From the NCBI GenBank assembly GCA_002189035.1, contig NEEC01000008.1, positions 2,418,001 to 2,482,000 of the forward strand: a stretch of DNA of 64,000 nucleotides, in the 5' to 3' direction. Both the position numbers and the translations under genes were made by a program. The notes beneath the pieces are model-generated. The model worked only from the letters and a program-made list of their open reading frames with translations. It searched no databases and had not been told where the DNA came from. This DNA is from Utricularia gibba (taxonomy: Eukaryota; Plantae; Magnoliophyta). This document shows positions 2,755 through 62,730 of the stretch, one piece after another (the first letter of the stretch is position 1; every line of letters begins with the position of its first letter).

Positions 2755-4089
2755 ATGTGTGGAGGAGCGATAATATCGGATGTCTTGCCTCCGCTGAGCC
2801 GAACCTCGCGGCGGCTCACGGCGGCGTTGCTCTGGGGTTCGGATTCCGGCGAGCTCGCCGGGAAGGGGAATCGAGGGGTTATCACTCGAAGCCTTTGAGA
2901 TCGCCTCCTCTTGTCAGCTTGGACGATGATTTCGAGGCTGATTTCCAGGATTTTAAAGATCATTCTGACGTTGACGACGAGTTCGACGCCAAAGGCTCGT
3001 TTGAATTTGCTGCTTCTGCGTTTAAAGGTGATTGTCTTGCCAGTAGGTGCTGTATCTGCTTTTTTTTTTTTTTTCTGGAGAGTTGTTTCCAGTAGTTGTT
3101 TTAGAATCTCGTGAAAATGGTAACTGCTGTTCTTCAGTCTTGGCAGTTTATGCTTCGATTTAGAAGTCTATGATTTTTAGTCGATGAGGCTCATGTAAAA
3201 TGTATGATTTTCGATCTTCATCTTTCCATGATTAGGAGGGTTGAGATCTCTCGATTCTTGTGAGTCTGATGAGGAGTGTGAGAAGCCTTCGAAACGGAAG
3301 AGGAAGAATCAGTATCGAGGGATCAGGCAGCGGCCGTGGGGTAAATGGGCAGCTGAGATCCGTGATCCTAAGAAGGGTGTTCGTGTTTGGCTTGGTACTT
3401 TTAATACTGCCGAGGAAGCTGCCAAGGCTTATGATGAAGAGGCTAGAAGAATCAGAGGTAAGAAAGCAAAGGTGAATTTCCCTCAAGATGCCCCTCATAC
3501 TGGTGCGAGACGTGATCTCAAGTCAAATTCACAAAAAGCGATCTCCCAGGAGAACAGGGACTTTGATCACCCCCCTGCAAATGAAATGGAATATATGAAG
3601 ATGCTCAACAATGGCTACTACGACTCTTTGACGTTCTTTGATGAGAAACCAGAAATTAAGCCAAAATGCTTGAATGGCGTTTATGCCCCCACGACGAATG
3701 TGGAGCCAATAGCTCATACGCTATCTGATGATTACTTCAGCCCTGATCAGGGTAGTAATTCATTCTACTGCTCAGACTTGGGGTGGAGTGAAACTGAGAT
3801 CTGTGCCACCGTGCCAGAGATTTCAGCTGTGAACTCTGCCGACATTGAGGTGGGTCAAGCTCAATTTCTAAGCAATGGTAGCCCACAGAATTCATTGCCC
3901 CGCATTGAGAGTTCAGATGCTACAGCGTTTGACTCCCAAATGAAGATGTATCAGGTGTCATACCTTGATAACAACTGGGTCTCTACGATTGATGCTCTCC
4001 TTGATGGGGATGCTACTCAAAATACTGGGCATTCCATGGACCTGTGGTCATTCGATGATGTTCTAGATATTGCTGGTTGTGCCTTCTGA
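2755..4089 (+). CDS. RAP2.12-like: Group VII ERF transcription factor (RAP2.2/RAP2.12-like), 2 exons, with an apparent 1-nt deletion in exon 1
   Basis: ATG at 2755 gives the [10 protein letters not shown]-degron, followed by the [11 protein letters not shown] motif. Intron about 3028-3238. AP2 domain [37 protein letters not shown] and C-terminal MDLWSFDD. Adding one G to GGGG at 2875-2878 joins the two frames of exon 1. Confidence 0.93.
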
Positions 4090-5387: not shown

Positions 5388-8300
5388 TCATCGGGGCTTC
5401 CACTCGCTTCCTTTTCCCATGAAGGACGACAGGGAGAAGAATGACCTCGGAGCTGCACAAACAAATAACCAATGAAAATTTTAAACTGCGGAGGTGTTTG
5501 TCCTCTGGTCGGAGAAAAGGTATCCACCAAGCTCTACTGAAAAACACTAGCACTTCCAAATATGTTTGCTAGTGACCAGCAAAACAATAAAGGAAGCAGC
5601 GGCAAAGTCTGCCTACATTGCATTAGTGTGTGTACCTTTCATAGCGCTTCCAGATGCATGATCCTCTTTCAGTTTGAAGAGGGATGGGGATTCTGGGATG
5701 GAAGAGTGTACTGTGGAAGAGAAACAGATCAAAACATCACTAAAAGTTGCCAGGCACACGATAGATAGATGCATTTATGATCTATGGAATACCAGAGTCG
5801 TTGAAAAAGTCACTCTCATTGTAATTGTCTTCAGAAGATGGGTGAGCTTGAGGAAATCCCATTCTCGACTTCCTGCTGAGATCATCTGAAGACCGGTTGG
5901 CTGGATCTCGCCCATCCTCCATATCATCATCACCTTCACTGGTGGTGGCGGATATCCAGTCAACAAAATTCTCCAACCCACGACTCTTCCTTCCGAATTT
6001 CAGTAATCTTTTAAACCCCTTGGTCACATCCTTGCGAGATGAGTTACTTGGGTAATGGGAAGCCAGAACAGGTTTCTGGGCTACTCCCATTTCTTTCTCA
6101 TATGAGAGGCATCAGTGTTCAAAGAATTCGAATTCCAGGAAGCAGGACTTCCAACAGGGGAATCTGCTGAGGCATCAACATCCGACATCTCATGCTGATA
6201 CGGAAAGAGATTTCGGCTTGGAGAGTTCCATGATATAGGGCATTCCCCAGGCCACTCTGGCACAGAATCACTGGCCAAGAACCTCAAAGAGATTTCATTA
6301 GGATACCTTGGATCAATGTGAGAATAGGAGGAAATATCACCATCAACAATTTTGGAGCTGAAACTCTGGTAATCATCTGAAGCAACCATCAGCATCTCCC
6401 CGTCTCCTATAGTATTACTCACCTCAGTTCGGGGGGTCTCAAAATTATGGCCACCAGAAACACTGCTCTTGAGTTCCAAAGTGTCGGGGCATGGTCATCA
6501 TTTTCTTCTACGGGGTTCAAAGGCTCAGTACCTGTAGAGACCTTTGATCTGGTTGCATCTGATTGTGAAACAAACCTTGCACGACTACCCTTTTTGAGGA
6601 AAGGTTTCATCCCCATACTTTTCTGAATTTCTTCATCAAACTTTATAGGCGCCAATAAAGCACCTTCAGAGTCAACAGAAGACTCCGAAAACCCATTCCC
6701 TGATTTCTTTAGTGAATGTAATCTCCGTGGTTTCTCCTCTTTGTCTGTAATTGTTTCTTCACCTGTAACTTTGCTACGAGGCTGGTTCCTTAGCTGTGAA
6801 CGATTTGTTTTGTTGCTTCCAGAAGATGGCTTAGTGCTTTCCTTACGGAGCTCAGAGAAGTTAGGGACAGATAATGCAACCGGATTCTCAACCTGCATCC
6901 TCCGTTTTCCCAAATTGGCAGATGCCTTGGAAGCAGATTTTAGAGCCGCTGCACTGCGAGGAGTAGAAGATGGCAAATTTCTTAGCTTACTACCCTGCAT
7001 TCTACCACTTCCACTGGAAAATAAGACATCATCTTGAGCCCTCTCTTCGTCATCACATTCACTATCTTCAAATTTTAACACCTGCTGTCATGATGTATAT
7101 AAAATTTGTTATTAAATCCACATACATGTAGATAGATACTTGACAGACAATGAAACACACCTGTTCCCTTTTTGTGTGTCCACTGCTATTAAAGGACCGG
7201 ACTCTCTCTGCACGCTGGCGAGTACTGCTCAGGGAATCCTGTCCAGAAGCAGCAGATTGGCCTAGTTTAGCCTTCATTTCTGAACTATTTCTCTCAAAAC
7301 TATCCTGCAGATTCTTCATCCTTGCTTCTTTCTGTGTTTTGTTGGAACTCCACCCTTCTCTCAACTTAGCGTCCCTTTTCTGTACATACTGATCATAAAG
7401 CTTCCCGCGGGAACCCTCAGAGACACTAAGATCGGAGAAATTCTTGTACAGAGAGTCAAAAGAGCTCTGATTGTCACTTTCATCAACGGTGGGCGTAGTG
7501 TTGAACTTGGAGTGTTCCCTTGAACTCCCAGTACGTGCATTTGACTTGGAATAACCAGATATTGAAGGAGTTGTATCCGCTGCTGTTTTTGAGTTGGGTA
7601 AGCAGGTTTCTGGCTCAACAGATAGAGCGTCTAACTTGCATGTATTTTCAACCTTGGATTGATCCCCAGCTACGCGTAACTTATGCTCAGCAAAGAGCTT
7701 TTCAAGTTCATTTGCTTTAATCCTCAATTCATCGTTGACATCATGATTTCTCCTGAACATCCTTGCACTTTCAGGCTGATCTGGACACGGAGAGGAAAAA
7801 TTAATGTAATTAGGCGGATCTGAAGTACTTCTAAGAGAAGGTGGTGCATTATGTCCACTGAAAAAGCCTTTATCTCGCCTGTTATTTGCCTTAATTCCAA
7901 GCATAGCTGATGATTCTTCCTTACGACGTTCCAAATTTTGAGGTCCTGAATCTTCAATTCCCAGCGCAGAAGCATAGGGCAACATCTCGGGGGTATTCAA
8001 CTCTTTCTCAGCCGTGCTCTCAACAGACCTTGCTCCTTGCTGCGCCGGCAAAACACTAGCTTCACTACTAGCTGTATCATAGCGAGCAGCAAAAGGCTCC
8101 TGGATCCTTGAAACAGGAATACTGCCCTCCAATATCCCAGACCCAGCCACCCTTCTCTGAGTGGGTTTCAAATTCACTTGCAACGCAGCAGAATCTCTGG
8201 ATTCAGTGTCTTCTTTCTGAGTTAAGGTATCAATCTTTAGACCACCTTTGCTTCCACTTTTCCTAGTTTGTTCCAGTGAAGAGCTCTGTTGCTTCAATTC

Positions 8301-10313
8301 AACCATCTTTGATTGGGGCTTACCAAGGTCAAAGCCAGTCCCCTTCCCTTGAACACCAACAAAATCATCACTCTCATTTTTACCGTTGAAAGAAGCTTTT
8401 GAATAATCCAAATTTTTTATATTTTCAGTGTTTCCAGCGGGGAAAATTGACTGAGCCTTGCTATAATCCTTTAGCGCATCACCTAACAGGGCCTTCCTAG
8501 GCACTTGATGCTTCAAACCATCGGTTTCAAAAGGAAATAGATGAGAACTAGTCTGGCTAGACTCAAAGGACATTTGAGACGCATTAGAAGAATTGCCCTC
8601 CAATCCGCTATTACTGAGCTTCCCCAAACCAGCCAGATCCTTGACCTCCGATTTGAGTACCGAGGAACTCTCTGATGGTTTGTAATTCTGATGCACGGTC
8701 CTTATCTCCTGAGAGGCAGTCAAAGAGGATGGAGTGCATAATGGACTTTCAGCATCCTTCTTCTCAGCACTCAAATCAATGCTCATATCACTTGCTCCGC
8801 TCCAACGCCTTAGGACTGCTTTATCTGGAGCCACGCCGACAGTTGAAACATCAGAAGACATTCTGCGCAACTCCACAGACTTCGTAGTAACGGGTTTCCC
8901 CCAGAATTCTCCTTCTGTTTACTTTCGAACATATTTATTCTGTCTTGAACACTCAGTCGTCTTGTTGGCTGAGAGCTTTGAATGGACTCGCTCTTATCAG
9001 AAGTTTTACTCTCATCTTTCTTAACATCTGCTTCTTCCTCAGTTTCAGTGGCTTGCTTAACTCCTCCATTTCTTTCATCACTGAAGTCTCTACTGATCGT
9101 ACGATGGAATGCGAGGGTTGTGGGGTTGGATAGCTGGGGCGGTGGAGATGGTGGATCGGAATCTATGGACATATCAGACCCATATGAAGAGCGAACTGCC
9201 CGATCCTCTGAACCACATGTTCGCCAGTTACTGATGAGGTTGGGCCGCTTCTCGCACAAAGACAGAAACTTGCCACAGGCATCGCTGAGTTCATGTAACA
9301 GAATGCATATAAGAGAAATGAGAAACATAAAAATTCAGTCTTTTTTTATAACAGGAGCCAACAGAAAATCTTACTTGAGGCGATGAGCACCAAACTTCTC
9401 AGCGAACATTTGTAGTTCAGAAACATTCTCAACGTTAAAACCTGCAGCAGCAGCACGTGCACAAGATGAAGAAAGATCCTGCTGCACTGCCTCAAGCCTC
9501 ACATCGATTGCTCTGAGCAGCTCCTTCCTGCACATGGATCGCATCTTTAAGAACTGAATAGCCAAAAGAGTACTACAACCGATCGATTATGGCATTGAAA
9601 GGGAAAAAGAATGCAGATTGTCAACAACTGATGCAAGAAGCTGAGTAAATCAAGTGCAAGAAAAACAAGAGCAGATGAATACTTGGTAGCGTCATCTGCA
9701 GCTGTCGACCCAGACAACTGATTTCCTGCTCCCTGAAATAAGTGGAGGCATAGAAGGAGAACACTTCAGCCTTTCACAATTCCACCAACCAAGAATCATG
9801 CAATTAAACTACAAAGTAAATGAACCTGTGCATATATCCTTCTGGCAGCCTCCAGCTGTGACATCTCAGCATCATGAGTATTGACAGCTTCTAGGATTTC
9901 AGGTGTGCTGACAAATCTAACAAACCTGTAGAAGGAATATTCAAATGATTTTAGGTGGATGCATTGATTGAATTGCCCAGATAAGTTGCTAAGGACGAAC
10001 CTCTCAAGCGTTCCCTTGGTGAACCACTCTTCACTGTTTCTACATCGTCCTACTTCAAGCTTAAATGACCGCGCAGCACTGGAAAATTGTTCCTCTACGC
10101 CCTTTAAATGCGCAGCAAAAGGTTTCAGCAATCCAGAAGCTATCTTCTCAGTGTTACCACCGGTAGAGATGAATAAATCACATCTGAAAAAGAAAAAAAA
10201 CCGCAATGAATGCTCAAGTCAAACAATATAAAGCTTAAAAACAAAATAATTCACCTGGAGCGGTTTGGCGAAAGCTGAAACACGGCGTAATCCAGAGGTG
10301 CTCCCGTCTTCAT
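5388..10313 (-). CDS. COP1-interacting protein-related (CIP7 / At3g14172-like), multi-exon, with three apparent 1-nt deletions
   Basis: ATG at 10313 gives [20 protein letters not shown], then [94 protein letters not shown], ending [20 protein letters not shown]. Frames are restored by +1 at 8898-8902, 6486-6489 and 6086-6088. Confidence 0.85.
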
Positions 10314-12540: not shown

Positions 12541-14858
12541 ATGGAGAGGCCTCGTACTACTACCGTCGCCGTCGTCCTTTTATCTCTGCTTTTGGGTCTC
12601 TTCTCCCACGGCGGCTTCGCGGCCGACCGCCGGACTTTCATAGTTCACGTCTCTAAGTCCTCTATGCCCCGCGCCTTCTCATCGCATCGCCACTGGTACT
12701 CTAACATCGTCTCCTCTCTGCCGCATCCGGCGCCGGAGATCCTATACACCTACGACCGCGCCGCCCAAGGGTTCTCGGTCCATCTCTCGCCTTCTCAGGT
12801 GGATGCCCTCCGCCGTGTCCCTGGCGTGGTCTCCTTGGTGCCTGACCAGGTCAACTATCTTCACACCACGCACACGCCCAAGTTCCTTGGACTTGCGGAT
12901 ACCTTCGGGTTGTGGCCTAATTCGGACTATGCCGATGACGTCATCGTCGGAGTGCTTGACACCGGGATCTGGCCGGAGGGACCGAGCTTTTCCGATGAAG
13001 GTCTGCCTCCGGTGCCCGATCGATGGAGGGAGGGTGTGTGGATGCAACAGATTTCCCCGCGACTTTGTGTAACAGGAAGATTATCGGCACAAAAGCTTAT
13101 TATCTAGGGTATGAAGCTGCGAGGGGAAATTCATTGGAGGACGAGAATAAATCCAGATCTCCGAGAGACACGGAAGGCCATGGAACGCATACGGCGTCGA
13201 CGGCGGCGGGATCTAGGGTTGCGAATGCAAGTCTGTTTGGGTATGCGCAGGGAGAAGCTCGTGGTATGGCGGTCAAGGCCAGGATTGCGGCTTACAAGAT
13301 CTGCTGGGCTTTCGGCTGTTACGATTCCGATATCTTGGCGGCATTTGAACAAGCAATTGAAGATGGAGTCGATGTGATCTCGCTTTCTGTCGGTACAAGT
13401 GGTTACGCGCCGGCGTACTACACAGATTCAATCGCGATTGGAGCATACAAGGCCGTGGAACAAGGAATTGTGGTATCTTGTTCCGCTGGAAACTCAGGTC
13501 CCGATCCCTACACCGCGGTAAACATCGCCCCCTGGATCTTGACCGTAGGTGCTTCCACTCTGGATCGCGAATTTCCGGCAGATGTGGTACTCGGTGACGG
13601 AAGAGTATTTGGTGGCGTGTCGCTGTATTCCGGTGAGCCACTTGGAGATAAACTATATCCTCTGGTATACGCAGGAGATGCCGGAAGCAGATATTGCTAT
13701 TCCGGAAGTCTTATCCCATCAAAAGTGGCTGGAAAAATTGTAATCTGTGATCGCGGAGGTAACGCCAGAGTAGAGAAAGGAAATTCTGTTCACGTTGCCG
13801 GCGGCGCTGGCTTGATATTGGCTAACTTAGCAGATTCAGGCGAAGAACTCCTGGCCGACGCACACTTCATCCCGGCCACTATGGTGGGGCAAACTGCTGG
13901 AGATCAAATTCGGAGTTATGCCAAATCAGCTGCAAAACCCACTGCGAGAATAGCGTTTAGAGGAACGGTGATAAGCACATCTCCGCCCGCTCCCCGCGTG
14001 GCCTCCTTCTCCAGCCGTGGCCCCAATTACCGGACGGCGGAGATTCTTAAACCTGACGTGATTGCTCCGGGAGTCAACATTCTCGCCGGTTGGACTGGTT
14101 ACGTTGGCCCAACAGATCTCGATTCAGATACAAGAAGAGTGGATTTCAACATTATCTCCGGCACATCAATGTCGTGCCCTCACGTCAGCGGCTTAGCGGC
14201 TCTACTGAAAAAAGCTCATCCCACTTGGTCGCCTGCGGCGATCAAGTCTTCTCTTGTGACATCTACTCACAATCTCGACGACACCGGCGCAGCGATATCT
14301 GACCTTGCCTCCGGCAAGACGTCCAACCCGTTCGTCCACGGGGCAGGCCATGTGAGTCCGAACCGCGCTCTGGATCCAGGACTCGTATATGATATCGAAA
14401 CCGGCGATTACATCGACTTCTTGTGCAGCATCGGATACGATTCGAGAAAAATTGCAGTTTTCTCCGGTTCGCTTTCCGGCTGCCAAGACTCGGGGATAAA
14501 AACTCCGGGTGATCTGAACTACCCTTCCTTCTCAGTGGTGTTCAACGACGCCGCCGGAGAGGTGAAGTACCAAAGAAAGGTGAAAAACGTGGGATCAGAA
14601 ACCGACGCCGTCTACACGGTGGAGGTGATCCCTCCAGCAGGGGTGGAAGTGAGCATATCGCCAGAGAAACTGACATTCTCCCAGGCTGTGACTGAACTGT
14701 CTTACACAGTAACGTTCAAGAGCAGCGGTGGGTGGTCGGATATTCTCGTCGGGAGTTCGAACTCTGCGTTTGGGTCAATTGTGTGGAGTGACGGCTTACA
14801 CCGCGTGAGGAGCCCCGTGGCGGTCTTGTGGCGCCTTTCTGCGGCGGCGGATATTTGA
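12541..14858 (+). CDS. SBT1.4-like: Subtilisin-like serine protease (SBT1.4/SASP-like), intronless, with an apparent 1-nt deletion
   Basis: Signal peptide, I9 prodomain and LHTTHTP processing site. Catalytic motifs GVLDTG, HGTHTAST and SGTSMSCPH, plus PA and Fn-III-like domains. ORFs 12541-13107 and 13023-14858 join as RWRGGCVD with +1 G at 13028-13030. Confidence 0.95.
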
Positions 14859-24500: not shown

Positions 24501-27224
24501 CGTGTTTATTATATTATTAGGGATGTTTCTGATTTTTCTTTGAATTATAAAAGAGCAGAGCTCTCTTAGGCGTGAGTTTGTGTCACAAAATCATGTTATC
24601 CAGCGCTTCTCCTTCATTCATGCAACAGTTGAAGAATAATGGACGTGCTTAACATTTACATTGTCGAATTCTGATGTCTTGTTTTCTTTCAGTTCTCCAG
24701 AACTTAGTCATCACCAGGCACTGGATTTCCAGAAGATCAACAGTCTTTCTTCTCAAGATCCTACTTCCACCACTGCAGCAGCTACCAAGAATGAACAGAA
24801 AAATGTATTGAGGGCCAGTCCGGTGGTAACTGAAGACATGGAGAAAATTGATATACTAAGTAACTCGCCAGAGCATTCAAATGAAAAAAAGAATTCCAAC
24901 AACAGTGACGGTACAGCAGGCAGCTCCAGTGATAGCAGAAGTGGAAGTGAAAGTGGTGATAGTAGTGAAAGTGAGAGTGATAGTTCAAGTCATAGCAGAA
25001 GTAAAAGTAGAAGCCCGCAGCAGAGTAACAGTGCAAGCAGTTCGGATACCACTGTCAGTAGCAAGCAGGCGTCTGATGAAGATGTAGACATTATGACAAG
25101 TGATGATGATAAGGAATCAATTCACAGATTGAAAGATTCTGGAGTGGCCTCATTCAAATCTCCCATTAATATTGGGGATTACGGAAAGCCTGATGGTATT
25201 TCTGATAATGCTGAAAGACAAGCAGCTAATTATTTGTTTCGTAATGGAGAAGATGAAGAACCCGTAAGAATCTTATCAACTGGTGAATGTAAAAGACAAC
25301 TTGATGATACTATGTATGACGACAAGTCTCATGACAGAAAGAGGTTCAAGAGCAGAAACTCAAGTCATCCAGTTTCTGGGACTCTAAACTTTATTTTTGG
25401 TGAGAGCCCTTCCAACTCTTCTCCTGATTCTCCTGTTGAAAGTCCTGGTAAAGTAGCCACCACTATGACCGATCGCAATGGTACAACTGACCTTACTGTG
25501 CAGTCAGGTTTGAACCAAAGAATGCCAAGCTCATACACCTCCGATACTCAGAAGGGAGTTCATAGATCCTCAGAAGCTTCTGTAGTGACTGAAACCTCAT
25601 CTAGAAAAAGAAAGCCTAACACGAATGACACTTCAGTACCTTCAGTTAAGCATTCTGAAAAGGTCAAATCAGCAGCCCGGTATCAACATGGTGTTGGAGA
25701 CAAGCATTCAACATTGGCTGGGGACGTCAAAGAGACTGTCTCTCATGCTAGCTCTCACGGTAGATCTCCAGTGATGGATGTGCGCCACAATGCACTCCGA
25801 AGAGAGTTTTCAGACCTTGAATTGGGTGAACTACGAGAAACAGTGCATGATGAAACTTCTGTAGGTAAGGCTGAGTTTCAGAGTAAAGTTCTTTCCAAAC
25901 AGTTAGAAACTAGATCAATGGATCCAGGATGTCAGAATTCAGACTTGAACCGGGGGAAACCATATGAGAAAATGACTACTGATGTGGGAGAATTGTCTCC
26001 TCGACAGCCAGAAGCAGATTTTTCTAGCAATGTTGATGTGGCATCAAAGAGGAAGGCAGCTGACAATTCTGCAGATAAAATTAAAGCATCTCAATCTCAG
26101 AACAAGCAGAATCAATTTTCTGGGGATTTTGTAGACTTTGGAACCCAGAATGTCAAAGTTACTGAGATGAAAATTAAAACTAAATACAGTGATGCCCGAA
26201 GTAAGGGTGCAGCGACGAAAACCCCTGCTAATAAGGTGCCTGTGGATTCAGTTGAGCAGTTGCATGACACTGTTGGAGCTACTGGTTCCCATGTCACAAA
26301 AGTCAGCAAAAAGCAGAAGCCTGGTACAGTGGGGCAGTCAAATGGCAAATTGAGAGCCCCTTAATGAAGGGGAATAATAGGGGAGCCCAAGAAAGTAACG
26401 AATCTCCAGATGAAATCGCATCCTTGTTCATCAAGTATGAGAAGGAGGCGCCTGAAATGAAGGGGCCCATAACGGATGTTTCACAGTGAGTATTAACATT
26501 CATTTTTTAACTAACGGTCACTGTGAAAATGTTCTTACAAAATTCATCTGAGATTAGTGTCTTATTTATGCGGGATTTTGCATTTCAGGTATGAAAATTA
26601 TGTCAAAGAGTATCAAGAGAAGTATGAAAGCTATTCCTTCTTGACTAGAACACTTGGGTCATACCGGTAATATACGCTGATCCGGAGGATCATTCCAATG
26701 CCAGTGCTTAAAGTTAGCTGACTTTTTTATTTGCTGCGTGCTCAGGAACGAGTTCAATAAACTTGGGAAGGAGCTTGAGGCTAGCAAGGGCCGGGATGCA
26801 AAGAGATATCACGATAAACTGGAGCAAATGATGTCATCATATCGTGAATGTGGCGAGGTACACCAATCACTCGTTTTTACAGTCTCAATTTCATGTTGCC
26901 AGTGTGTTATTGGTAATTTAGGGCCTGAAGCTCATTCTAGTTTCTATTATCTCCATGGTTGATTCAAGCACTTGGACCACTCTTAAAATGGTCTCTAGTT
27001 TTTGCTTCTGACAAGTTCTTCTTCCACAGAGACATAAACGAATGAAGAAGGTTTTTCTTTTGCTTCATGAAGAATTGAGGGTCTGACCTCTCTCTCTCTT
27101 GATGTTTCTTTAGGGTTATCAAGATTTCATTTCCTCATTGCTTGATCGTTTCCATTCTTGTTGTTATGTGCAGCATTTGAAACAGATGATTAGAGATTTT
27201 GCCGCCTCATACAAGAAAAAATGA
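21597..27224 (+). CDS. Protein with C-terminal occludin/ELL domain and Ser/Asp-rich middle (At3g21290-like), multi-exon, with an apparent 1-nt deletion
   Basis: Exons encode LAPDLVEEIKRVEAQG..KFDVN, FTWSREPGDLCDVYEE..WRKLNVERELDDSTKNHVK, an SSSDSRSGSESGDSS tract and KYEKEAPEMKGPI|YENYVKEYQEKY..RNEF..HKRMKKVFLLLHEELRHLKQMIRDF. +1 C is needed at 26357-26360. TGA at 27222-27224. Confidence 0.85.
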
Positions 27225-28169: not shown

Positions 28170-29986
28170 ATGTACCGAATGCCTGCTCTCCATTTGCATT
28201 TCAACAGGAACGGCGCCTTCACTGCTGGGAGCAGAATCAGGTACTCGTCTACGTGTTCTCGCTTCAAGACAGAGATCCGTCATGCCACCCTTTTAAAAGA
28301 TGGAACCATTGAGATCCCACATTTTTGTAACTACTTACTTACCCTGTATATGGACACTCGGCATTCAGATTCTGTAGGGAAGCTGTTCGACGAAATTACT
28401 CAAAGAGATGTTAGAACTTGGACGATTCTCATATCGGGTTTGTCCAGACGGGGGCATTACTTGATTGCCCTGGACTACTTTCGTCAGATGATGGCGGAAG
28501 GAAGGGTTGTCCCAATGCTTTTACTCTGTCGAGTTTGCTCAACTGTTGCTCTTCTCTAGAAAGGGGGTGGCGATGGGGGAAGGCGGTTCATTGCTGGATT
28601 ATCAGAAATCCAATTGGTGTTGATGTTGCATTAGAAAATGCGCTTCTTGATCTGTATGCTAAATTCAAAGGTTTCCATTATTTGAAACGGTTCTTTGAAC
28701 TAATGGAGGATAGAGATTCAATATCTTGGAATATTGTGATGGCCGCGGAGATAAGCAGAGGTGCAGTGGAAGATGCTCTTCGTTTGTTTTGGAGGTTGCC
28801 ATCCAAAACAGTTTCAAGTTGGAATACTATGATTGATGGGCTTCTGAAACATGGATTTGAGATAAAGGCTTTGGAGCTTCTCCACGACATGGTAAAAGCT
28901 GGAACCGCTTTTGATCATGTCACGTACTCGACGTCGTTGGCTTTAACCGCTTCACTACAGAATCTGCAACTAGGGGCACAGATTCATTGTCGTGTGCTTA
29001 GAAATGGGATTCATGATGATTCATTTGTACATACCGCACTTATTGACATGTACTGCAAATGCAGGGAAATGGGGAAGGGTTCACTGATTTTTCAAGAATC
29101 AAAAGGAGGGTTGGGATCCAGTCATGATTTAATGACAGAAACTATTTCTCGAAGTGCACTTGTTGCAGGATATGTCCAAAATGGTATGGTAAATGATGCC
29201 TTGAAGTGCTTCAACTCCATGATTCATGAACAGCAGGAAATCGAACTCTTTACATTTACTAGCATTCTTGTAGCCTCATCTCATGCTGCTTTATTGGAGC
29301 TTGGTGAGCAGATTCATGCTCATACAATGAAGTCTGGGGACATTCAAGATATCATATTGTCTGCATCCATGATTGACATGTATGCCAAATGTGGAAAACT
29401 GGGCAATGCCTGGTCCTTTTTCAGACAAACTCAATCAAGGAATGTTGTGCTCTGGAGCGTGATGATATCCAGCTATGGAGTGCACGGCCGTGGAGTAGAA
29501 GCAGTTCAGCTGTTTGAGTTAATGAGAAACAAGGGGATTAAGCCAAATGAGGTCAGTTTCCTGGGACTTCTCACAGCTTGTAGCCATGCTGGTTTGGTTA
29601 AAGAGGGCTGCAATTACTTCAAAATGATGATAGATATGTGTGGTATTCACCCAGGCATAGAGCATTTTCTCTGCATGGTAGACCTTTTGGGCCGTGCTGG
29701 TCACTTGAAAGAAACGGAATACTTCGTTTATGCGAATGGGATCCACCATTTAAGACAAGTGTGGAAAGCTTTTTTGTCAAATTGCTGGCTTCATAAGAAT
29801 GTTCAAATGACTAACTGGATCTCAGAGAAAATTCTTGCACTGGAGGGGCGGGTGATCCATCCCAATCCTGATTCCGACTCCCCAAAATATGTTTTGGAGG
29901 AAGCAGCTAAGTTATGTGATCACATGCTGCAAAATGGAGTTGTAAAACACCCGGGCCAATCGTGGATCTATTTAAAGAACACCTGA
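28170..29986 (+). CDS. PLS-class pentatricopeptide repeat protein ending in an E-domain motif, with an apparent 1-nt deletion
   Basis: Repeated motifs such as RDVRTWTILISG, ALLDLYAK, DSISWN, ALIDMYCKC, MIDMYAKCG and HFLCMVDLLGRAG; ends KHPGQSWIYLKNT*. The two ORFs join as GRVVPNAFT with +1 C at 28511-28513. Confidence 0.92.
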
Positions 29987-34983: not shown

Positions 34984-35506
34984 GAGGTAAGTCCTCTTCC
35001 ATGAGACGCTGCTGCTACTTGCTACAGAGCTGTTCTTCAGGTGTCAAGCAATAGCTCCAGTTAGCAACCGTATAGGATGCAACAGCCCTCTTCTCCAAAC
35101 AAGGAAATGCCTGCTGCCCATCTATCTATCAGTGTGTGTAGTATATCATAAATAAAATGCTGGTGACAAAATATTGTACAAAACATGACAGAGGAATCTG
35201 GATCTTTGTCTGTGTTTCATATCAGTGAAGGCCTTCTGTGGTAGCCCTCCTGTTTTGATGAGTCTCAAACCCAGAACTGTCAAATCATCTTCATGTCTTT
35301 GGACATGACAAAGCATCTTGTCATGTCCAATCCATGCTTTCTTGTCTAATCCATGGTTCCTCGTGTAATTCTCCTTTGTCGCCTTGCAGCATACTCACAA
35401 CCCTCACAAGCAACATCAACACCCTCAACAAGCAGAAGAACTGCCCTTGTTGTAAAAAATGGACATTGAAGAATTAAATACAAACTCGTAACATATAAAA
35501 TATATG

Positions 35507-35510
<4 letters not shown>

Positions 35511-35541
<31 letters not shown>
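35511..35541. repeat. (TTA)n microsatellite, about 10 units
   Basis: Directly visible run of tattattatt... Confidence 0.9.
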
Positions 35542-36394
35542 TGAACAATTATTACCAGGTTCAAGGAGTATATTGGAAGACATGGGGGCCGCCATAGGGG
35601 ATTTTTCTGCCTGAAAAGGCAAGGCCCGGAATGCTCTTAAAAGGACACTACTTGTACATCCACATCCAATGAATGCGGCGGTGCCGGAAAAGGAAGGCGG
35701 GGACGGAGAAAGGAGGAGTGGGAGTCAAGAAACGTGGGGAGGATAAATAAAATACACCAATAAAATCCCTCTCACGCCCCGCCAGGCGCCACCACAGACA
35801 CGTGATCCACATGGTGGATGATACTCCCCACATGAATGAATAAATAAATAAAAGAATTGGAATAAATTACGTAATTAACATAAATATCCCCGGTCCCCAC
35901 AAGAGACAGAGATTATTAAAATATTACATAGTGGACGGCCAGGGGTTGACCGTGACTTTGACATGTTCGATTGAAATCACACGCCAGCGAAGGAGGGAGG
36001 CTTCTTTCATTTAAACCACGTTTCTAGATAACCCTAATTCCCCATGTGTGATTTATTACCCGAGGAGTTGCATAAACCCTAATTTATTACCGGATGGGGG
36101 GCATAAGCAAACCATGAAATGAAAAGGGGATTTGGGGTTGATTGATTTGACGGAAAATGGGTGTTAAGACAATTCCTCGTCATTTGTGCAGTGTTTAACG
36201 TGGATGCCTATCCAGATTCACAGTTGAAGAGTAAGCTGGAATTTTCTCTTGGTTGCCATTCCATCAAGCAACTTCCTTCTCGCCTTCCATTTCCTTTCGC
36301 TTCTCCTGCTCTGTGTGTGTGTATATATAGCCAAGAGCTGGGGGTGGCTCCAAACAGTTTTGCAAGATAGGGCCAATCGATCAACGGAAATTCG

Positions 36395-37018
36395 ATGGTG
36401 GCCGGGAGCCAGGCGGCCTTCAAGGGCCTGAGCAGTCTCTTCACACATCTTCCCACCGGAACGGTCTTCCTGTTCCAGTTCCTCAGCCCGATATTGACCA
36501 ACAACGGCCAGTGTAGACCGGTGAACAAGATCTTGTCCAGCTCCTTCATCTTCCTCTGCAGCTTATCATGTTTGCTCTTCGCCGTCTCCGATAGCTTCAC
36601 CGACTCCGACGGGAATAAGGTCTTCGGCATCGCCACCAGGACGGGGATGTGGCTCGGGTCCCGGGCGGTGGCTCGAGACGACTTGTATGAATATAGACTT
36701 CGGGCGGGGGATTTGGTGCACGCCTCCTTCTCTTTGATTGTTTTTGGTGCCGTCGCGCTTCTTGACTCCAACATGGTGAACTGCTTCTACCCGGAGTTCC
36801 AGTCCACGCAGGGCATGCTCGTCATCGTCATCCCCACCCTCATCGGAGCCATATCCGGCATTGTGTTCGTCATGTTCCCGAACAAGCGCCACCGACTACG
36901 GTATGCTTTGTACTATTGGTACCTCTATTCATTCTATAACACACACAAAACTAGAGTTCCCCGTCATGAAACCCTCTTTTACGTAAACCCGTACGGCATA
37001 TCGGAATGTGAACTTTAG
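36395..37018 (+). CDS. DMP: DMP (DUF679) membrane protein, DMP2-like; unspliced reading, possibly exon 1 of a DMP-RRM fusion
   Basis: LPTGTVFLFQFLSPILTNNGQC, SDSFTDSDG..GIAT..GMW, YRLRAGDLVHA, LLDSN..CFYP and FPNKRH. The expected GIGY tail is replaced by RLRY. Confidence 0.88.
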   Translation: MVAGSQAAFKGLSSLFTHLPTGTVFLFQFLSPILTNNGQCRPVNKILSSSFIFLCSLSCLLFAVSDSFTDSDGNKVFGIATRTGMWLGSRAVARDDLYEYRLRAGDLVHASFSLIVFGAVALLDSNMVNCFYPEFQSTQGMLVIVIPTLIGAISGIVFVMFPNKRHRLRYALYYWYLYSFYNTHKTRVPRHETLFYVNPYGISECEL

Positions 37019-37109
37019 GCACCGCATTGTATTTATCGTATCGTCCTCCTGCATGAACAATTGTCGTTCCGACGGGCATTCTAATGAACTCTTTGAATTG
37101 TCGTTTCAG

Positions 37110-37623
37110 ATTGAAGCAAAAGGCAGGTGGTGCCTGGACGGTGGAGAGCGAAGAGACGCAGGCACCAGAGATGAAAAAGGAGGAACACGCACCAGCGCAG
37201 GGCGTAGCATTTCATGAACCAGAGGAGCAAACTCCAAGCATCTCCTACTTCGTCACCAACTTCCCCGAACACATGACAGCAAAGGATCTCTGGATCATCT
37301 TCACCAGATGCATCGGTCCCGTCGTGGACGTCACCATCCCCGGCGCCCGGACAAAAAGAGGGGCCCGCTTCGCCTACATCCGCTTCCCCGTACGGTCTCT
37401 AGACGAAGAGCTGGAATGCGCCCGCCGGATTTCCTGCGCCTGGTGGGGCGGCTACAAGTTTGTGGTCTGCCCAGCCCACTCGCAGAGGTACACCGATCAC
37501 TATCATCCGATGCTCATTTCTTGTCCCCCCGAGCCGCCGCCACCGGTGAACCACGCGGCCAGCAGTAATTCTAGGTTGCAGCCCCCGGCGCACCAGCTCA
37601 ACGAGGTTCGTGTTGAAAGATGA
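37110..37623 (+). CDS. RRM-domain exon/ORF resembling the RRM of plant LINE ORF1; own ATG at 37171 or spliced to the DMP exon
   Basis: RNP2-like SYFVTNFPE, then DLWIIF..GPVVDVTIPGARTKRGARFAYIRF (RNP1-like) and CAWWGGYKFVV. No reverse transcriptase or endonuclease sequence downstream. Confidence 0.7.
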
Positions 37624-39132
37624 ACCTCTTCTTCTTCTTCTTTTTTTTTTTTTTAATAATTTTTTGAGAGAAGGTTTGAAATCAAACCAATTCTCTAACG
37701 ACATCCACAATTCATTCATTTTTTTTTAATTTGACATATTTTTTTCTTGTTGCAATGTACATGTTTTATCAACTATTACATTTTTTTTATATTATTACAT
37801 ATTAATCAGTGTCTTACGGTTCAAATCATATTATCGATTGGGTCCATATCGCATCGATTCGACTTTGAAATCCGATTTTGAAAACACATATGCACAATTA
37901 TCTTATCAAATAATACTTCAAAGGCGGCGACAATTACATAAAATGAGACGTGGAAGACTCCCTTATCTAAAAAATTGACCTCCTGGATCAAATAATGTGT
38001 CACTATCCATAATCTTATAATTTTACATTCTTTTTTTAAAAATACTTCGTACAAGACTAGAAGTATTCATCTACCATTTGTCACCAATATATTATATTGT
38101 TACTAGCCTCCTAAGCTCACATAATGGTTATGTCCAAATTCTAGGATTAGGGTTTGGGTTAAAACTAAAATGCTTTCGGTCGATCCGTACATTTCTAACC
38201 GGGAAAAAATATTATTTATTACATAATTTATCTTGTCTGGTGTATAATTTGTTATTTAGAGAATATTATTGAATGGAGATTTAAATTACTTAATGATGAT
38301 ACTCGATGATCCAATGCCTCATTAAAATATTATAAGAAAATTTACACGTATTAATTAATAAAATTACCAATTGAATTTGCAGGTGTGAACTTGGGATTTT
38401 CGTGAATTTCCACGTGTTTCAAAGATAACCCCCGTGTCCGTGTCTAAATCCGTGTCATAGCTTCCGGATCGGGGAATGTATGGCCTGCTGCTTGTTTCAG
38501 GTTCCTTCAACTTCTTTTTTCCTTTTTTAGACGAAAAGTTTGAAGGGGACAACGCACCCACACCCCAAACCTAGAAGCAAGAACCCAAACCATCACGTCT
38601 CGACATGCAAAATAATTATTAATTAATTGATTAAACTTTAGAATATGCTCTGCTTATTCCTCCCTCAAGCATTAAATTCCGAGAAAATCTTACAAAATCG
38701 ATCTATGAAAAAAAAGTAAAGTTAATATTAATTAATTAATTTTTTTCTGCCAATAATTTAAAATTTAATATTAAACTTTGAGTACTTAAATATTTTTTTC
38801 GCATATACGTCTAATTTGATGTTTTTTTAAATGAATGTATAGAACTAAATGATTAAGGGTAGTATAGTAAATAAACACATTAAAACATGTTAAATTGAGA
38901 ATTTTCTGATTATTGATGGTTCTTCTTTTATTTTTCTTTTCTTTTTTTGTGTTAATTTATAGTAAAATGGTCAAGCTGGGTACGGGTCGGATTCAGCGGG
39001 TTATGAGTTGAACCCACCGGGTTGGAAATTGATTTCATGATTCAGTGGGTACGGGTCAACAGGTCATAAAGGACGACCAGTCTCAGGTCATGGGTTGACT
39101 TGGGACAGAGTAAATTGAAGTTATTTAATGTT

Positions 39133-50100: not shown

Positions 50101-51273
50101 GTACCATTCCAGATCATGCTTGGTGATGTGTCACATTATCCATTAATCCTCTCCACGCCATTTCAATCCTAATGCCCTTTTTTTTTATTTAACTATAGAG
50201 TTTGCTCCTGTTACACAATCTTTGTGTCAGGATTTCCTTAGACTGTGAAGACACCTTGTAAACACAGTAACTTCTTCGATTCTTAGGGTTATTCTGAACA
50301 TGCTTGCCATTTATTTTTTCATAAGCATGCATTTTTATATGTACTCTAGTTGTGTAAAAGTAATGAGGACTAGAAGCAGAAGCCAAAAGCAGGTACGTTT
50401 CCCTCTCCCTTCTCAAGGCTGCAGGGATATATTTCCTTGATTCTGAATGAAAGAGCTCTGTGCTCAAACTCTTTCCACTCTTGCTTATCTGAGAATGGAT
50501 CTCAGTAGTAAATGACTGTGGACGAGCCTTTACTCATGCATTATTATGGTCCATGAACCTTAGGATTTCCGACCACCTAAGTGTAGGGTGCAGACCTGCT
50601 TAAGGGCCGTAGCTCCCCAGTTCCATCACTTCACCTGCATGCACCCTTAAATACACCTCGCACGTGCGCAGCTCTCAGGATGCTTGTAGTAGCAACCCGC
50701 TGACTCTCCCAGTTGAGATCATCACTTCTTCTCCAGGTCACTTGCAGCTGTCATAAAACATGGATCTTGTTAGAAACAAGGGAGGATGTAAGATGTTAGA
50801 ACCAAGGGTGAATTAAATATATAAATTATTCACTTAAATAAAAAAATAGCATATGTAATGCATTTTTAATTTATATATGTGAGAAAAAATTAATAGAAAA
50901 TCTTACTGATATTTTTTAGATTTAAATGGGAATAGGAGTTTTAAAATATATTTTAAAAGTTGGGGAGAGTGATAGACTATTTAAAATAAACAAATAAATA
51001 AATACACTGGGGCGGTAACGGCTAGCTATGTGATGGATGCTCCGCTCTACTGTCTGCTTGAGCTGAGCTATGGTAATGGATGGTAATAGTCAACACAGAG
51101 AAGAAGGAGGGTGGACGTGGCTCTTCTCTTCCCGTCCGTGGGTGGCGTATCTGTTATGGCCAGGCATGGGTCTCCTCCTCTTGCCGTTGGATCCTGCTGA
51201 GACCACCCCCTCATGATATTCCTTCCTCGATTTGTGCACTTGCCGGTAGGGGAATCTGGGACATTGAAGCCCC

Positions 51274-52403
51274 ATGGATTTCTTGAAAACAGTTTTATCG
51301 GGGACCTCGCCCCTTCGTCTCCCAGTTCTTCACCTCCAGATTCCGATCCCGAAGATTCCGCATCCTCGTGGACGTTTGGGTCCAGTCTCATGCAATCTAT
51401 AGCTTCAAAGTCGGAATCTTTGCTTGGAAACTACTACAGAGATATCCAAGAATTCACCTCCGGTTTGAAGGATGAGAGTTTGGTTATTCGTGAAGCCGCA
51501 AGCCGAGCGTTGAGGTACTTCCCTGCCCGGCTGGATTCCGGGGCCGCCATCGCACAGGAATCGCTGGAAGCGGTGGGTCAGTCTATTGATATCGTTGCGG
51601 AATTGATTGGTAAGGAGATGAATCTTGCGAGAGGGAACGGGTATTCGAGAAGCGGCGGTGATGCTAAGTTGAACGTGATTGGTAGGCCGTATAGTAGGTT
51701 GGAGGCGGTGATTAGCGGGTTGCAGGGGGACGCTTCTACGTACTGTGATGAAATTGACGACAGTAGTAGTTTCAGTGACTGGAAATTGGAGTTCAGGATC
51801 GAGGGGAAAAGCGAAGAGATAGATAGGCTATTGAAGGAAAATGGGGTGATCAGAGAGATTCATGATGAAATTGTTCCCCAGAGAGTCGATGATCAGACAT
51901 TCTGGTGTCGGTACTTCTATCGGGTAGAAATGGCTGTTAAAGCTGAAGAAACCAGGGCATCCATAGTAAAGCGTGCTATTTCAGGAGATGCAGATGAGGA
52001 TTTCAGCTGGGATTTTGATGATGATACTGAACCTGCCGATGGTGGTAATGTTGATAGTCCCACTGAGGCGGCGGAGGAAGAAAAAGAAGCATTGAAATCT
52101 CAGATGAAGGCCGATCCTCAGGCTGATGAAGTGAACCCAGGGGGCAGATCATCATGTAGCGAGAAAGAAGGATCGGATGGAAAGCTTGGAAGCGATATTT
52201 CCATTATTTGGAGCCAAAAAACTCCTCATGCTGAGGATGACATGGGGTGGGATGAGATTGAGCATATCCCTAGCGGTGAACAGAACAAACCAGAGAGCCA
52301 CCGGAAATCTGCACAGGAAGATGAAGGCCTGACCCACTGGGGAGGAGAGGATGAGGATGAGGATGAGGATGAGGATGAGGATGAGAATGATCCCGCCAAG
52401 TAG
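51274..52403 (+). CDS. BSD domain-containing protein, intronless, with an apparent 1-nt deletion
   Basis: The likely true start MDFLKTVLSG at 51274 joins the long ORF with +1 G at 51300-51303. It continues SIASKSES..YYRDIQEFTSGLK, PYSRLEA..LQGD..TY, IVPQRVDDQTFWCRYFYRV and an acidic tail. Confidence 0.9.
52347..52385 (+). repeat. (GAGGAT)6 coding microsatellite giving an (ED)n tract at the BSD C-terminus
   Basis: Directly visible in the sequence. Confidence 0.9.
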
Positions 52404-61680: not shown

Positions 61681-62730
61681 ATGGCCTGCCGGAGCTTCTC
61701 CCTCTCCTCCTTCATCCGCCAGCTCGGCCTCCTGTCTCTCATTCTCCTCCACTCGTCCACCGCAACCTCCGCCGTACGCCTTCACCCGGGCGGCGGGACT
61801 GTGCTTCCTTCCTTTCGTGAAGCCCCCGCCTTTCGCAACGGCCGGACATGCAAATCCTCCAACGGTCAGACCATCCGCATTGTGATGCCCTTGGACGTGA
61901 ACTATATTAGGGGAACGATGGCTGCCGTCTTGTCCATCTTGCAGCACTCCACATGCCCTGAGAATGTCTCCTTCCATTTTCTCACCATTCACATGGAGCC
62001 CGAGTTCCTGTCCCTCATCAAATCTACATTCCCTTACCTGAGCTTCTCCATGCATAGATTTGATGCCAGTCGTGTCCAGGGTAAGATATCGAAATCCATT
62101 CGTCAAGCCCTGGACCAGCCTCTAAACTACGCAAGAATATACATGGCAGACATCCTTCCGCCGGAGGTGAAGAGGGTCATCTATTTGGATTCAGATATCG
62201 TGGTGGTGGATGACATCGCCCGCCTCTGGAGCGTCGATTTGTCGAACAAGGTGTTGGCTGCACCAGAGTACTGTCATGCAAATTTCACCAACTATTTCAC
62301 AGAGGCTTTCTGGTTGGACTCCACCTTGTCCTCAACCTTCAAGGGGCGCAAGCCGTGCTACTTCAACACCGGCGTAATGGTGGTTGATGTTGAGAAATGG
62401 AGGGCGGGACGATATACTGAGAAAGTGGAGGTGTGGATGATGATTCAGAAGCAGAAGAGGATTTACAACTTGGGGTCATTGCCTCCGGTTCTGCTCGTCT
62501 CCGCCGGGAACATCAAACCGGTTCACCATCGATGGAACCAACACGGGCTTGGAGGTGACAACACGGAAGGCCGATGCAGGAGGCTCCACCCCGGGCCTAT
62601 CAGCCTTCTCCATTGGAGCGGCAAGGGGAAGCCATGGCTGAGGCTCGACGCAAGAAGGCCCTGCACTGTTGACTACTTGTGGGCACCCTATGATCTCTAC
62701 CGTTCTTCCCGTGTCGCGCTAGAAGGGTAG
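61681..62730 (+). CDS. GATL: Galacturonosyltransferase-like (GATL, GT8 family), intronless
   Basis: [36 protein letters not shown] (DxD motif), [19 protein letters not shown] and [11 protein letters not shown]. Confidence 0.95.

Follow-up and report, generated by a model that had tools for sequence, protein, structure and literature searches.

A spliced transcript of Utricularia gibba joins a DMP membrane domain to an RRM of the plant L1 ORF1 type

The locus at 36395-37623 on the + strand of the window (the whole 64-kb stretch of Utricularia gibba DNA analysed here) is likely a real, transcribed gene of two exons, the first encoding a DMP (DUF679) domain and the second an RRM. The product would likely be held in the ER or endomembranes with the RRM in the cytosol. 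The existence of a spliced DMP-RRM mRNA with an open reading frame is very probable, and the spliced form was the only form assembled in the four sequencing runs that were mapped.

All features of the gene are on the + strand. A candidate TATA box, TATATATA, was read directly from the sequence at 36322-36329 and may act in the promoter; it sits 38-65 nt 5' of the contig starts at 36367 (run X5), 36371 (X1) and 36387 (X2). The 5' UTR covers at least 36367-36394 according to these starts, with no joint farther upstream, and no ATG precedes the one at 36395 within the contigs. The coding part of exon 1 (36395-36900, 168 codons plus 2 nt) carries the DMP domain, as supported by PF05078, alignment, hydropathy and the contigs, and it ends in the basic sequence KRHRLR after the last hydrophobic segment. 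A GT..AG intron of 209 nt (36901-37109) is absent from the contigs of X1, X2, X5 and X6. The coding part of exon 2 (37110-37623) has 171 codons including a split Arg, with the contigs in register from 37109/37110, and its stop codon is TGA (37621-37623). The RRM, which is of the plant L1 ORF1 type and is supported by Pfam, phmmer, AlphaFold and Foldseek, occupies 37237-37476, which corresponds to residues 43-122 of exon 2 and 212-291 of the fusion protein. The 3' UTR (37624-37800) was delimited by the contigs and by composition. It is AT-rich with a GC content of 0.22, and the contigs end in this AT-rich sequence at 37789 (X2) and 37800 (X6).

The splice signals were also read directly from the sequence. 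The donor CTACG/GTATGC (the slash marks the splice site) is at 36900/36901, with its GT at 36901-36902. It stands in the context CAC CGA CTA CG/GTATGC, where the DMP frame reads FPNKRHRLR. A CTAAT motif at 37081-37085 precedes the acceptor by 25 nt, and the acceptor, TCGTTTCAG followed by A, is at 37109/37110. All three were present where an earlier, sequence-only reading of the locus had placed them. Joining the exons gives 506 + 514 = 1020 nt, made up of 339 codons and the stop TGA. CG+A at the junction forms the split Arg codon, followed by LKQKAGGAW. The donor GT spans two codons, taking its G from the last position of codon 169 and its T from the start of the conserved Tyr170 codon, which puts the splice site within the old GIGY motif. 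The intron-retained frame would meet an in-frame stop at 37016-37018, and no database record matched the 207-aa unspliced ORF exactly. The GC content of the intron was 0.42, compared with 0.57-0.59 in the flanking exons. GC3 was 0.80 in exon 1 and 0.79 in the RRM core, whereas the intron and the whole window both had a GC content of 0.42.

A search of sequencing runs found words of the query in nine runs from three studies of one organism. The best four runs contained 0.80-0.82 of the sampled words, and exons make up about 0.82-0.83 of the query. Four runs (X1, X2, X5 and X6, from three studies) were mapped as assembled contigs onto 35400-38600. Each run gave one contig, and all four contigs omitted exactly 209 nt, passing from 36900 to 37110 with GT..AG borders; the shorter arm of the contig at the junction measured 166-255 nt. 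Contig coverage was limited to 36367-37800. The depth was 10-96 in the exons, 0.19-2.7 in the two intron-containing bins and zero in the flanking genomic bins. Since both exons were present, the intron was omitted in all contigs and flanks were missing, the assemblies were taken as transcriptomes and the joined form as spliced mRNA. The + strand was assigned because GT..AG reads on that strand. The RNA nature of the runs is recorded as a guess, and the contigs give no strand, abundance or rare unspliced forms.

A joined form of this kind could also arise as a DNA retrocopy or as an assembly chimera rather than as a spliced transcript, and the guessed run type and the strandless contigs would agree with that origin. 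However, the identical GT..AG junction appeared in four independent assemblies from three studies, and X1 and X2 matched both exons at 100%. The runs contained no genomic flanks and omitted the intron throughout, whereas plant DNA libraries would contain both. Transcriptomes would also account for the assembly sizes of 8-86 Mb and for contigs that begin and stop where a transcription start and a 3' end are plausible. The artefact is thus very improbable, and it was rejected on the four concordant junctions, the lack of flanks and the transcriptome-like assemblies. The sequence-only reading had proposed the 209-nt intron and had named transcripts ending before 37110, or running unspliced with no junction, as evidence against it. 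Every contig was spliced as predicted. The in-frame product of 1020 nt and 339 aa that it had derived was upheld as well, and its frame is uninterrupted in the window as well as in two variants.

The DMP domain of the fusion protein was investigated by profile search and alignment. DUF679 (PF05078) matched residues 11-168 with an E-value of 7.8e-54 and 182.4 bits against a cutoff of 25, covering profile positions 2-161 of 163. In this full-length match the protein resembles the DMP2-like proteins (AtDMP1/AtDMP2 group); it also retains their conserved LPTGTVFLFQFL..P.LTNNGQC segment, and its last helix likewise ends in FPNKRH. The alignment comprised 14 sequences, the window protein and 13 DMP2-like proteins. 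Its 44 invariant sites were retained, including the loop cysteines C40 and C130, which match the pair proposed as a disulfide in AtDMP1 (PMC5383025). Kyte-Doolittle hydropathy with a 19-residue window and a threshold of 1.5 showed three strong segments, at residues 43-69, 104-128 and 138-163; at about 19-37, the counterpart of TM1 is conserved yet stayed under the threshold.

The protein also differs from the DMP2-like proteins in clear respects. Those are intronless and have about 180-210 aa, whereas the fusion has two exons, 339 aa and a second domain. The usual N-terminal leader of 15-20 residues is missing, and GIGY is replaced by RLR and a foreign exon. The decay of HGIGY to HRLRY at the junction, noticed earlier from the sequence, was confirmed: the motif reads RLRY unspliced and RLRL spliced, and G167R and G169R are unique among the 14 DMPs. 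These two belong to a set of seven private changes, each at a site where the other 13 proteins do not vary. The published norm for the DMP family is a single domain, about 180-210 aa and mostly no intron, and a survey of 240 DMP genes in 24 species found a single DMP domain only (PMC11477165).

The identity of the window's DMP (36395-36898) to other Lamiales DMPs was 55%, while those Lamiales DMPs shared 77% with one another. The neighbouring gene GATL4 of the same window (61681-62727) showed 76% to other Lamiales and 77% among them. The DMP part therefore appears either to have evolved unusually fast or to belong to a paralog lineage unsampled elsewhere. The divergence fits relaxed constraint as well as it fits a new function. 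This neighbour is an intact, intronless GATL4-like gene of the GT8 family, with 349 aa at window positions 61681-62730 (+); its best matches are from Lamiales, with the top identity, 81%, in Genlisea aurea.

The mRNA could be real and still be a neutral, lineage-specific accident, in which a relaxed DMP2-like duplicate was joined to an RRM fragment lying 3' of it, its GIGY codons served as the donor, and the whole is now decaying, with a product that does not work or is at best a crippled DMP. The accelerated DMP part, the seven private substitutions at invariant sites together with the lost GIGY, and the absent leader all argue for such an accident. The 44 retained invariant sites and both loop cysteines argue against it, and further evidence on both sides came from exon 2.

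Pfam identified RRM_1 in exon 2 with an E-value of 8.1e-6 and 26.1 bits against a cutoff of 20.7, over profile positions 2-47 of 70. Both domains expected by the sequence-only reading, DUF679 and RRM, were thus recovered above the cutoffs. The AlphaFold model, which was built with the family alignment, has the order beta-alpha-beta-beta-alpha-beta over residues 43-121 with a pLDDT of 90-96. The modelled strands are at 43-49, 73-75, 86-93 and 118-121 and the helices at 57-67 and 97-108; both flanks of the RRM have low model confidence. The top PDB matches in Foldseek were the RRMs of Fox1, RBM7 and Tra2 (RRMs or RRM-containing chains, probability 1.00). The full fold is present in the model; therefore, the partial Pfam match understates the domain, and the RRM of exon 2 is complete as modelled. 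Fifteen of the 16 invariant or near-invariant RRM positions of the family are kept, and the sixteenth has changed from F to Y. By alignment, the RNP aromatics are also kept, namely F47 in YFVTNF and F87 and Y89 in RFAYIRF. Exon 2 consists, in order, of an acidic linker of about 42 disordered residues, the RRM and a proline-rich tail. The conserved family positions and RNP aromatics speak against neutral decay of this exon, as does its strong GC3 periodicity.

The source of exon 2 was investigated by protein searches. A word-index protein search gave no matches. Exhaustive phmmer found 659 proteins at E ≤ 1e-3, all aligned via residues of about 35-130; the best matches had an E-value of 1.2e-15 and identities of 40-46%, and the range for the plant L1 ORF1 proteins was 35-46%. 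A library of 1.84 billion representatives contained nothing above 50% identity to exon 2. The closest relatives are plant proteins in which the RRM is N-terminal and DUF4283, Exo_endo_phos, RVT_1 and zf-RVT come after it. Eight long relatives were tested, of which six carried RVT_1 and/or Exo_endo_phos, several of them with zf-RVT and DUF4283 in addition. Shorter relatives had RRM_1 with or without DUF4283, and some relatives bear the source name RNA-directed DNA polymerase. The aligned region opens about 8 residues ahead of strand 1; it takes in the pre-RRM segment 'EDxxxxIS' and weakly reaches the Pro-rich linker of ORF1 proteins. Exon 2 also shares the signature xFVTNFP...DLW...G.VxDVxIP...K.G.RFAFxRF...xW.G.YK with plant L1 ORF1 proteins of the BNR-like lineage, which have an RRM and DUF4283 and are followed by an EN/RT ORF2. 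An RRM-type ORF1 of plant L1 elements is described in passages of PMC5203782, which cite Heitkam and Schmidt 2009. These results make it quite probable that the RRM originated from the LINE ORF1 family.

Unlike plant L1 LINEs, the locus has the RRM with short flanks only, and a host gene for a membrane protein uses this RRM as its C-terminal exon. No other LINE parts were found in the 64-kb window, where tblastn with ten LINE-type proteins matched only 37129-37602. Remnants of DUF4283, a zinc knuckle, an endonuclease or an RT were likewise absent from the window by tblastn, and no second copy of the RRM or the DMP was found there. Around exon 2 there was no poly(A) tail, A-run, flanking direct repeat or target-site duplication; a T-rich run follows the stop codon. 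In view of the missing LINE remnant, poly(A) and target-site duplication, it is family membership only that points to an origin from an element, and a retrotransposon copy that landed here would be no more than a putative source. The exonisation of a LINE-type fragment, as first proposed from the sequence, was therefore supported with respect to the RRM family of plant L1 ORF1, but the traces of an inserted element did not appear.

The same observations bear on a different source, namely a host gene of the RRM family instead of a retrotransposon, with the RRM exon as its copy or its remnant. The family includes many stand-alone 'alpha-beta plait' proteins, and the two best matches of exon 2, with 213 and 184 aa, are short and contain the RRM alone. 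A host source would also agree with the missing DUF4283, endonuclease and RT remnants in the window, with the missing poly(A) tail and target-site duplication, and with the GC3 of the RRM (0.79), which is like that of the adjoining DMP exon. LINE insertions are usually 5'-truncated, and a fragment of the 5' part only is atypical for one. However, the short matches come from Tanacetum draft annotations that are rich in TE fragments, and one of them has a duplicated RRM segment of the sort that such fragments often show. RVT_1 or Exo_endo_phos in six of the eight long relatives and the recurrent DUF4283 are further points against a host gene, and so is homology that reaches 'EDxxxxIS' and, more faintly, the Pro-rich linker of ORF1. 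Such a source is considered improbable, and the LINE ORF1 family is the preferred origin of the RRM.

The combination of the two domains was searched for in other proteins. The best 120 DMP relatives were DMP2-like proteins of 114-362 aa with identities of at most 57%, all annotated with PF05078 alone, and no RRM occurred among them. This agrees with the earlier statement that no DMP with an RNA-binding domain is known. No DMP domain occurred among the best 150 of the 659 RRM relatives. The architecture, which the sequence-only reading had suggested looking for in relatives, was accordingly without a match in these two sets, and no ortholog with it was found in other species among the 120 DMP and 150 RRM relatives. 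A full-text literature search for DUF679 together with RRM returned one unrelated paper. In the searched literature, neither DMPs nor plant RRM proteins are described as having a four-pass anchor with an RRM. Plants offer well-documented cases of chimeric TE-gene transcripts and of TE domains that were exonised or domesticated. The locus resembles them in that a coding fragment of a TE family lies 3' of a host gene and is joined to it by a new splice junction. It differs from the usual cases in that a complete folded domain has been recruited, which stays in frame and serves as the last coding exon.

Sequence variants were compared between the runs. X1 and X2 were identical to the window over both exons. 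X5 had eight listed coding differences and an in-frame GCC insertion behind 37532, and X6 had 12 coding differences. The GCC insertion was the only indel; it falls within the CCG/CCA proline-repeat tail, is a length polymorphism and keeps the frame. The forms look allelic because each run gave a single form, with a paralogous source as the alternative. The 339-codon frame was free of stops in the window, X5 and X6 forms, which differ by 1-1.5%. In exon 2, nonsynonymous and synonymous changes numbered about 3:2 in X5 and 6-7:4 in X6, numbers too small for a selection test, and with so few changes the ratio was not distinguishable from neutral. The RRM core had one nonsynonymous and one synonymous change, compared with about 8 + 5 in the disordered tails.

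These variants complete the evidence on the neutral accident. The mostly nonsynonymous changes in exon 2 and the failure to find an ortholog with the DMP-RRM architecture are in its favour. The frame kept intact in three forms 1-1.5% apart, the few changes in the RRM core relative to the tails, and the assembly of the transcripts in three studies weigh against it. A neutral accident is a serious possibility, though one with somewhat less than an even chance. A product that is translated and kept by selection for an RNA-related role has a similar or slightly smaller chance.

The location of a fusion protein can be considered from the properties of AtDMP1. Both termini of AtDMP1 are cytosolic, and replacement of GIGY by AAAA or the addition of a C-terminal eGFP impairs its export from the ER (PMC5383025). 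In the window protein, the basic stretch KRHRLRLKQK directly follows the last hydrophobic segment (138-163), and hydropathy analysis detected no hydrophobic segment in exon 2. By analogy with the topology and export of AtDMP1, and from the basic stretch and the hydrophilic exon 2, the product is most likely an ER or endomembrane anchor with a cytosolic RRM. The loss of GIGY together with a C-terminal cargo would retain the fusion protein in the ER/endomembrane system. The DMP part would anchor it in the membrane, and the flexible acidic linker would leave the RRM exposed to the cytosol, in a position to hold RNA at the membrane. RNA binding by the fusion protein is putative, as is any function. 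A maintained new gene, in which a LINE-type RRM is tethered by an export-deficient DMP on the cytosolic face of the ER/endomembrane system, is rather unlikely as a whole.

If such a tether exists, it could hold specific RNAs at the membrane, for instance to localise translation or to sequester RNAs from LINEs or elsewhere. Independently of such a tether, the locus is a clean, transcript-supported case of gene birth through domain capture, in which the codons of a conserved motif conceal the splice donor that links a membrane protein to a complete RNA-binding domain of retrotransposon type. DMPs are of practical weight in gamete fusion and haploid induction. A protein that is made and maintained would be a rare integral-membrane RRM protein and would offer a natural experiment on DMP trafficking, combining GIGY loss with a C-terminal cargo. 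If the fusion is neutral, it would show how easily such chimeras gain stable expression in a compact genome.

The surroundings of the locus are gene-dense and otherwise without LINE sequences. The neighbours include an AP2/ERF gene (3241-4089, +), a gene for a PPR protein (28418-29986, +) and a gene for a BSD-domain protein (51213-52403, +). A further neighbour at 12541-14858 (+) encodes a subtilase with Peptidase_S8, PA and fn3_6, whose N-terminal part may be a separate ORF (12541-13107). Two long ORFs have no Pfam match, one of 602 aa at 7068-8876 (-) and one of 567 aa at 24661-26364 (+). Both are Ser-rich and of low complexity and are probably large exons for disordered proteins.
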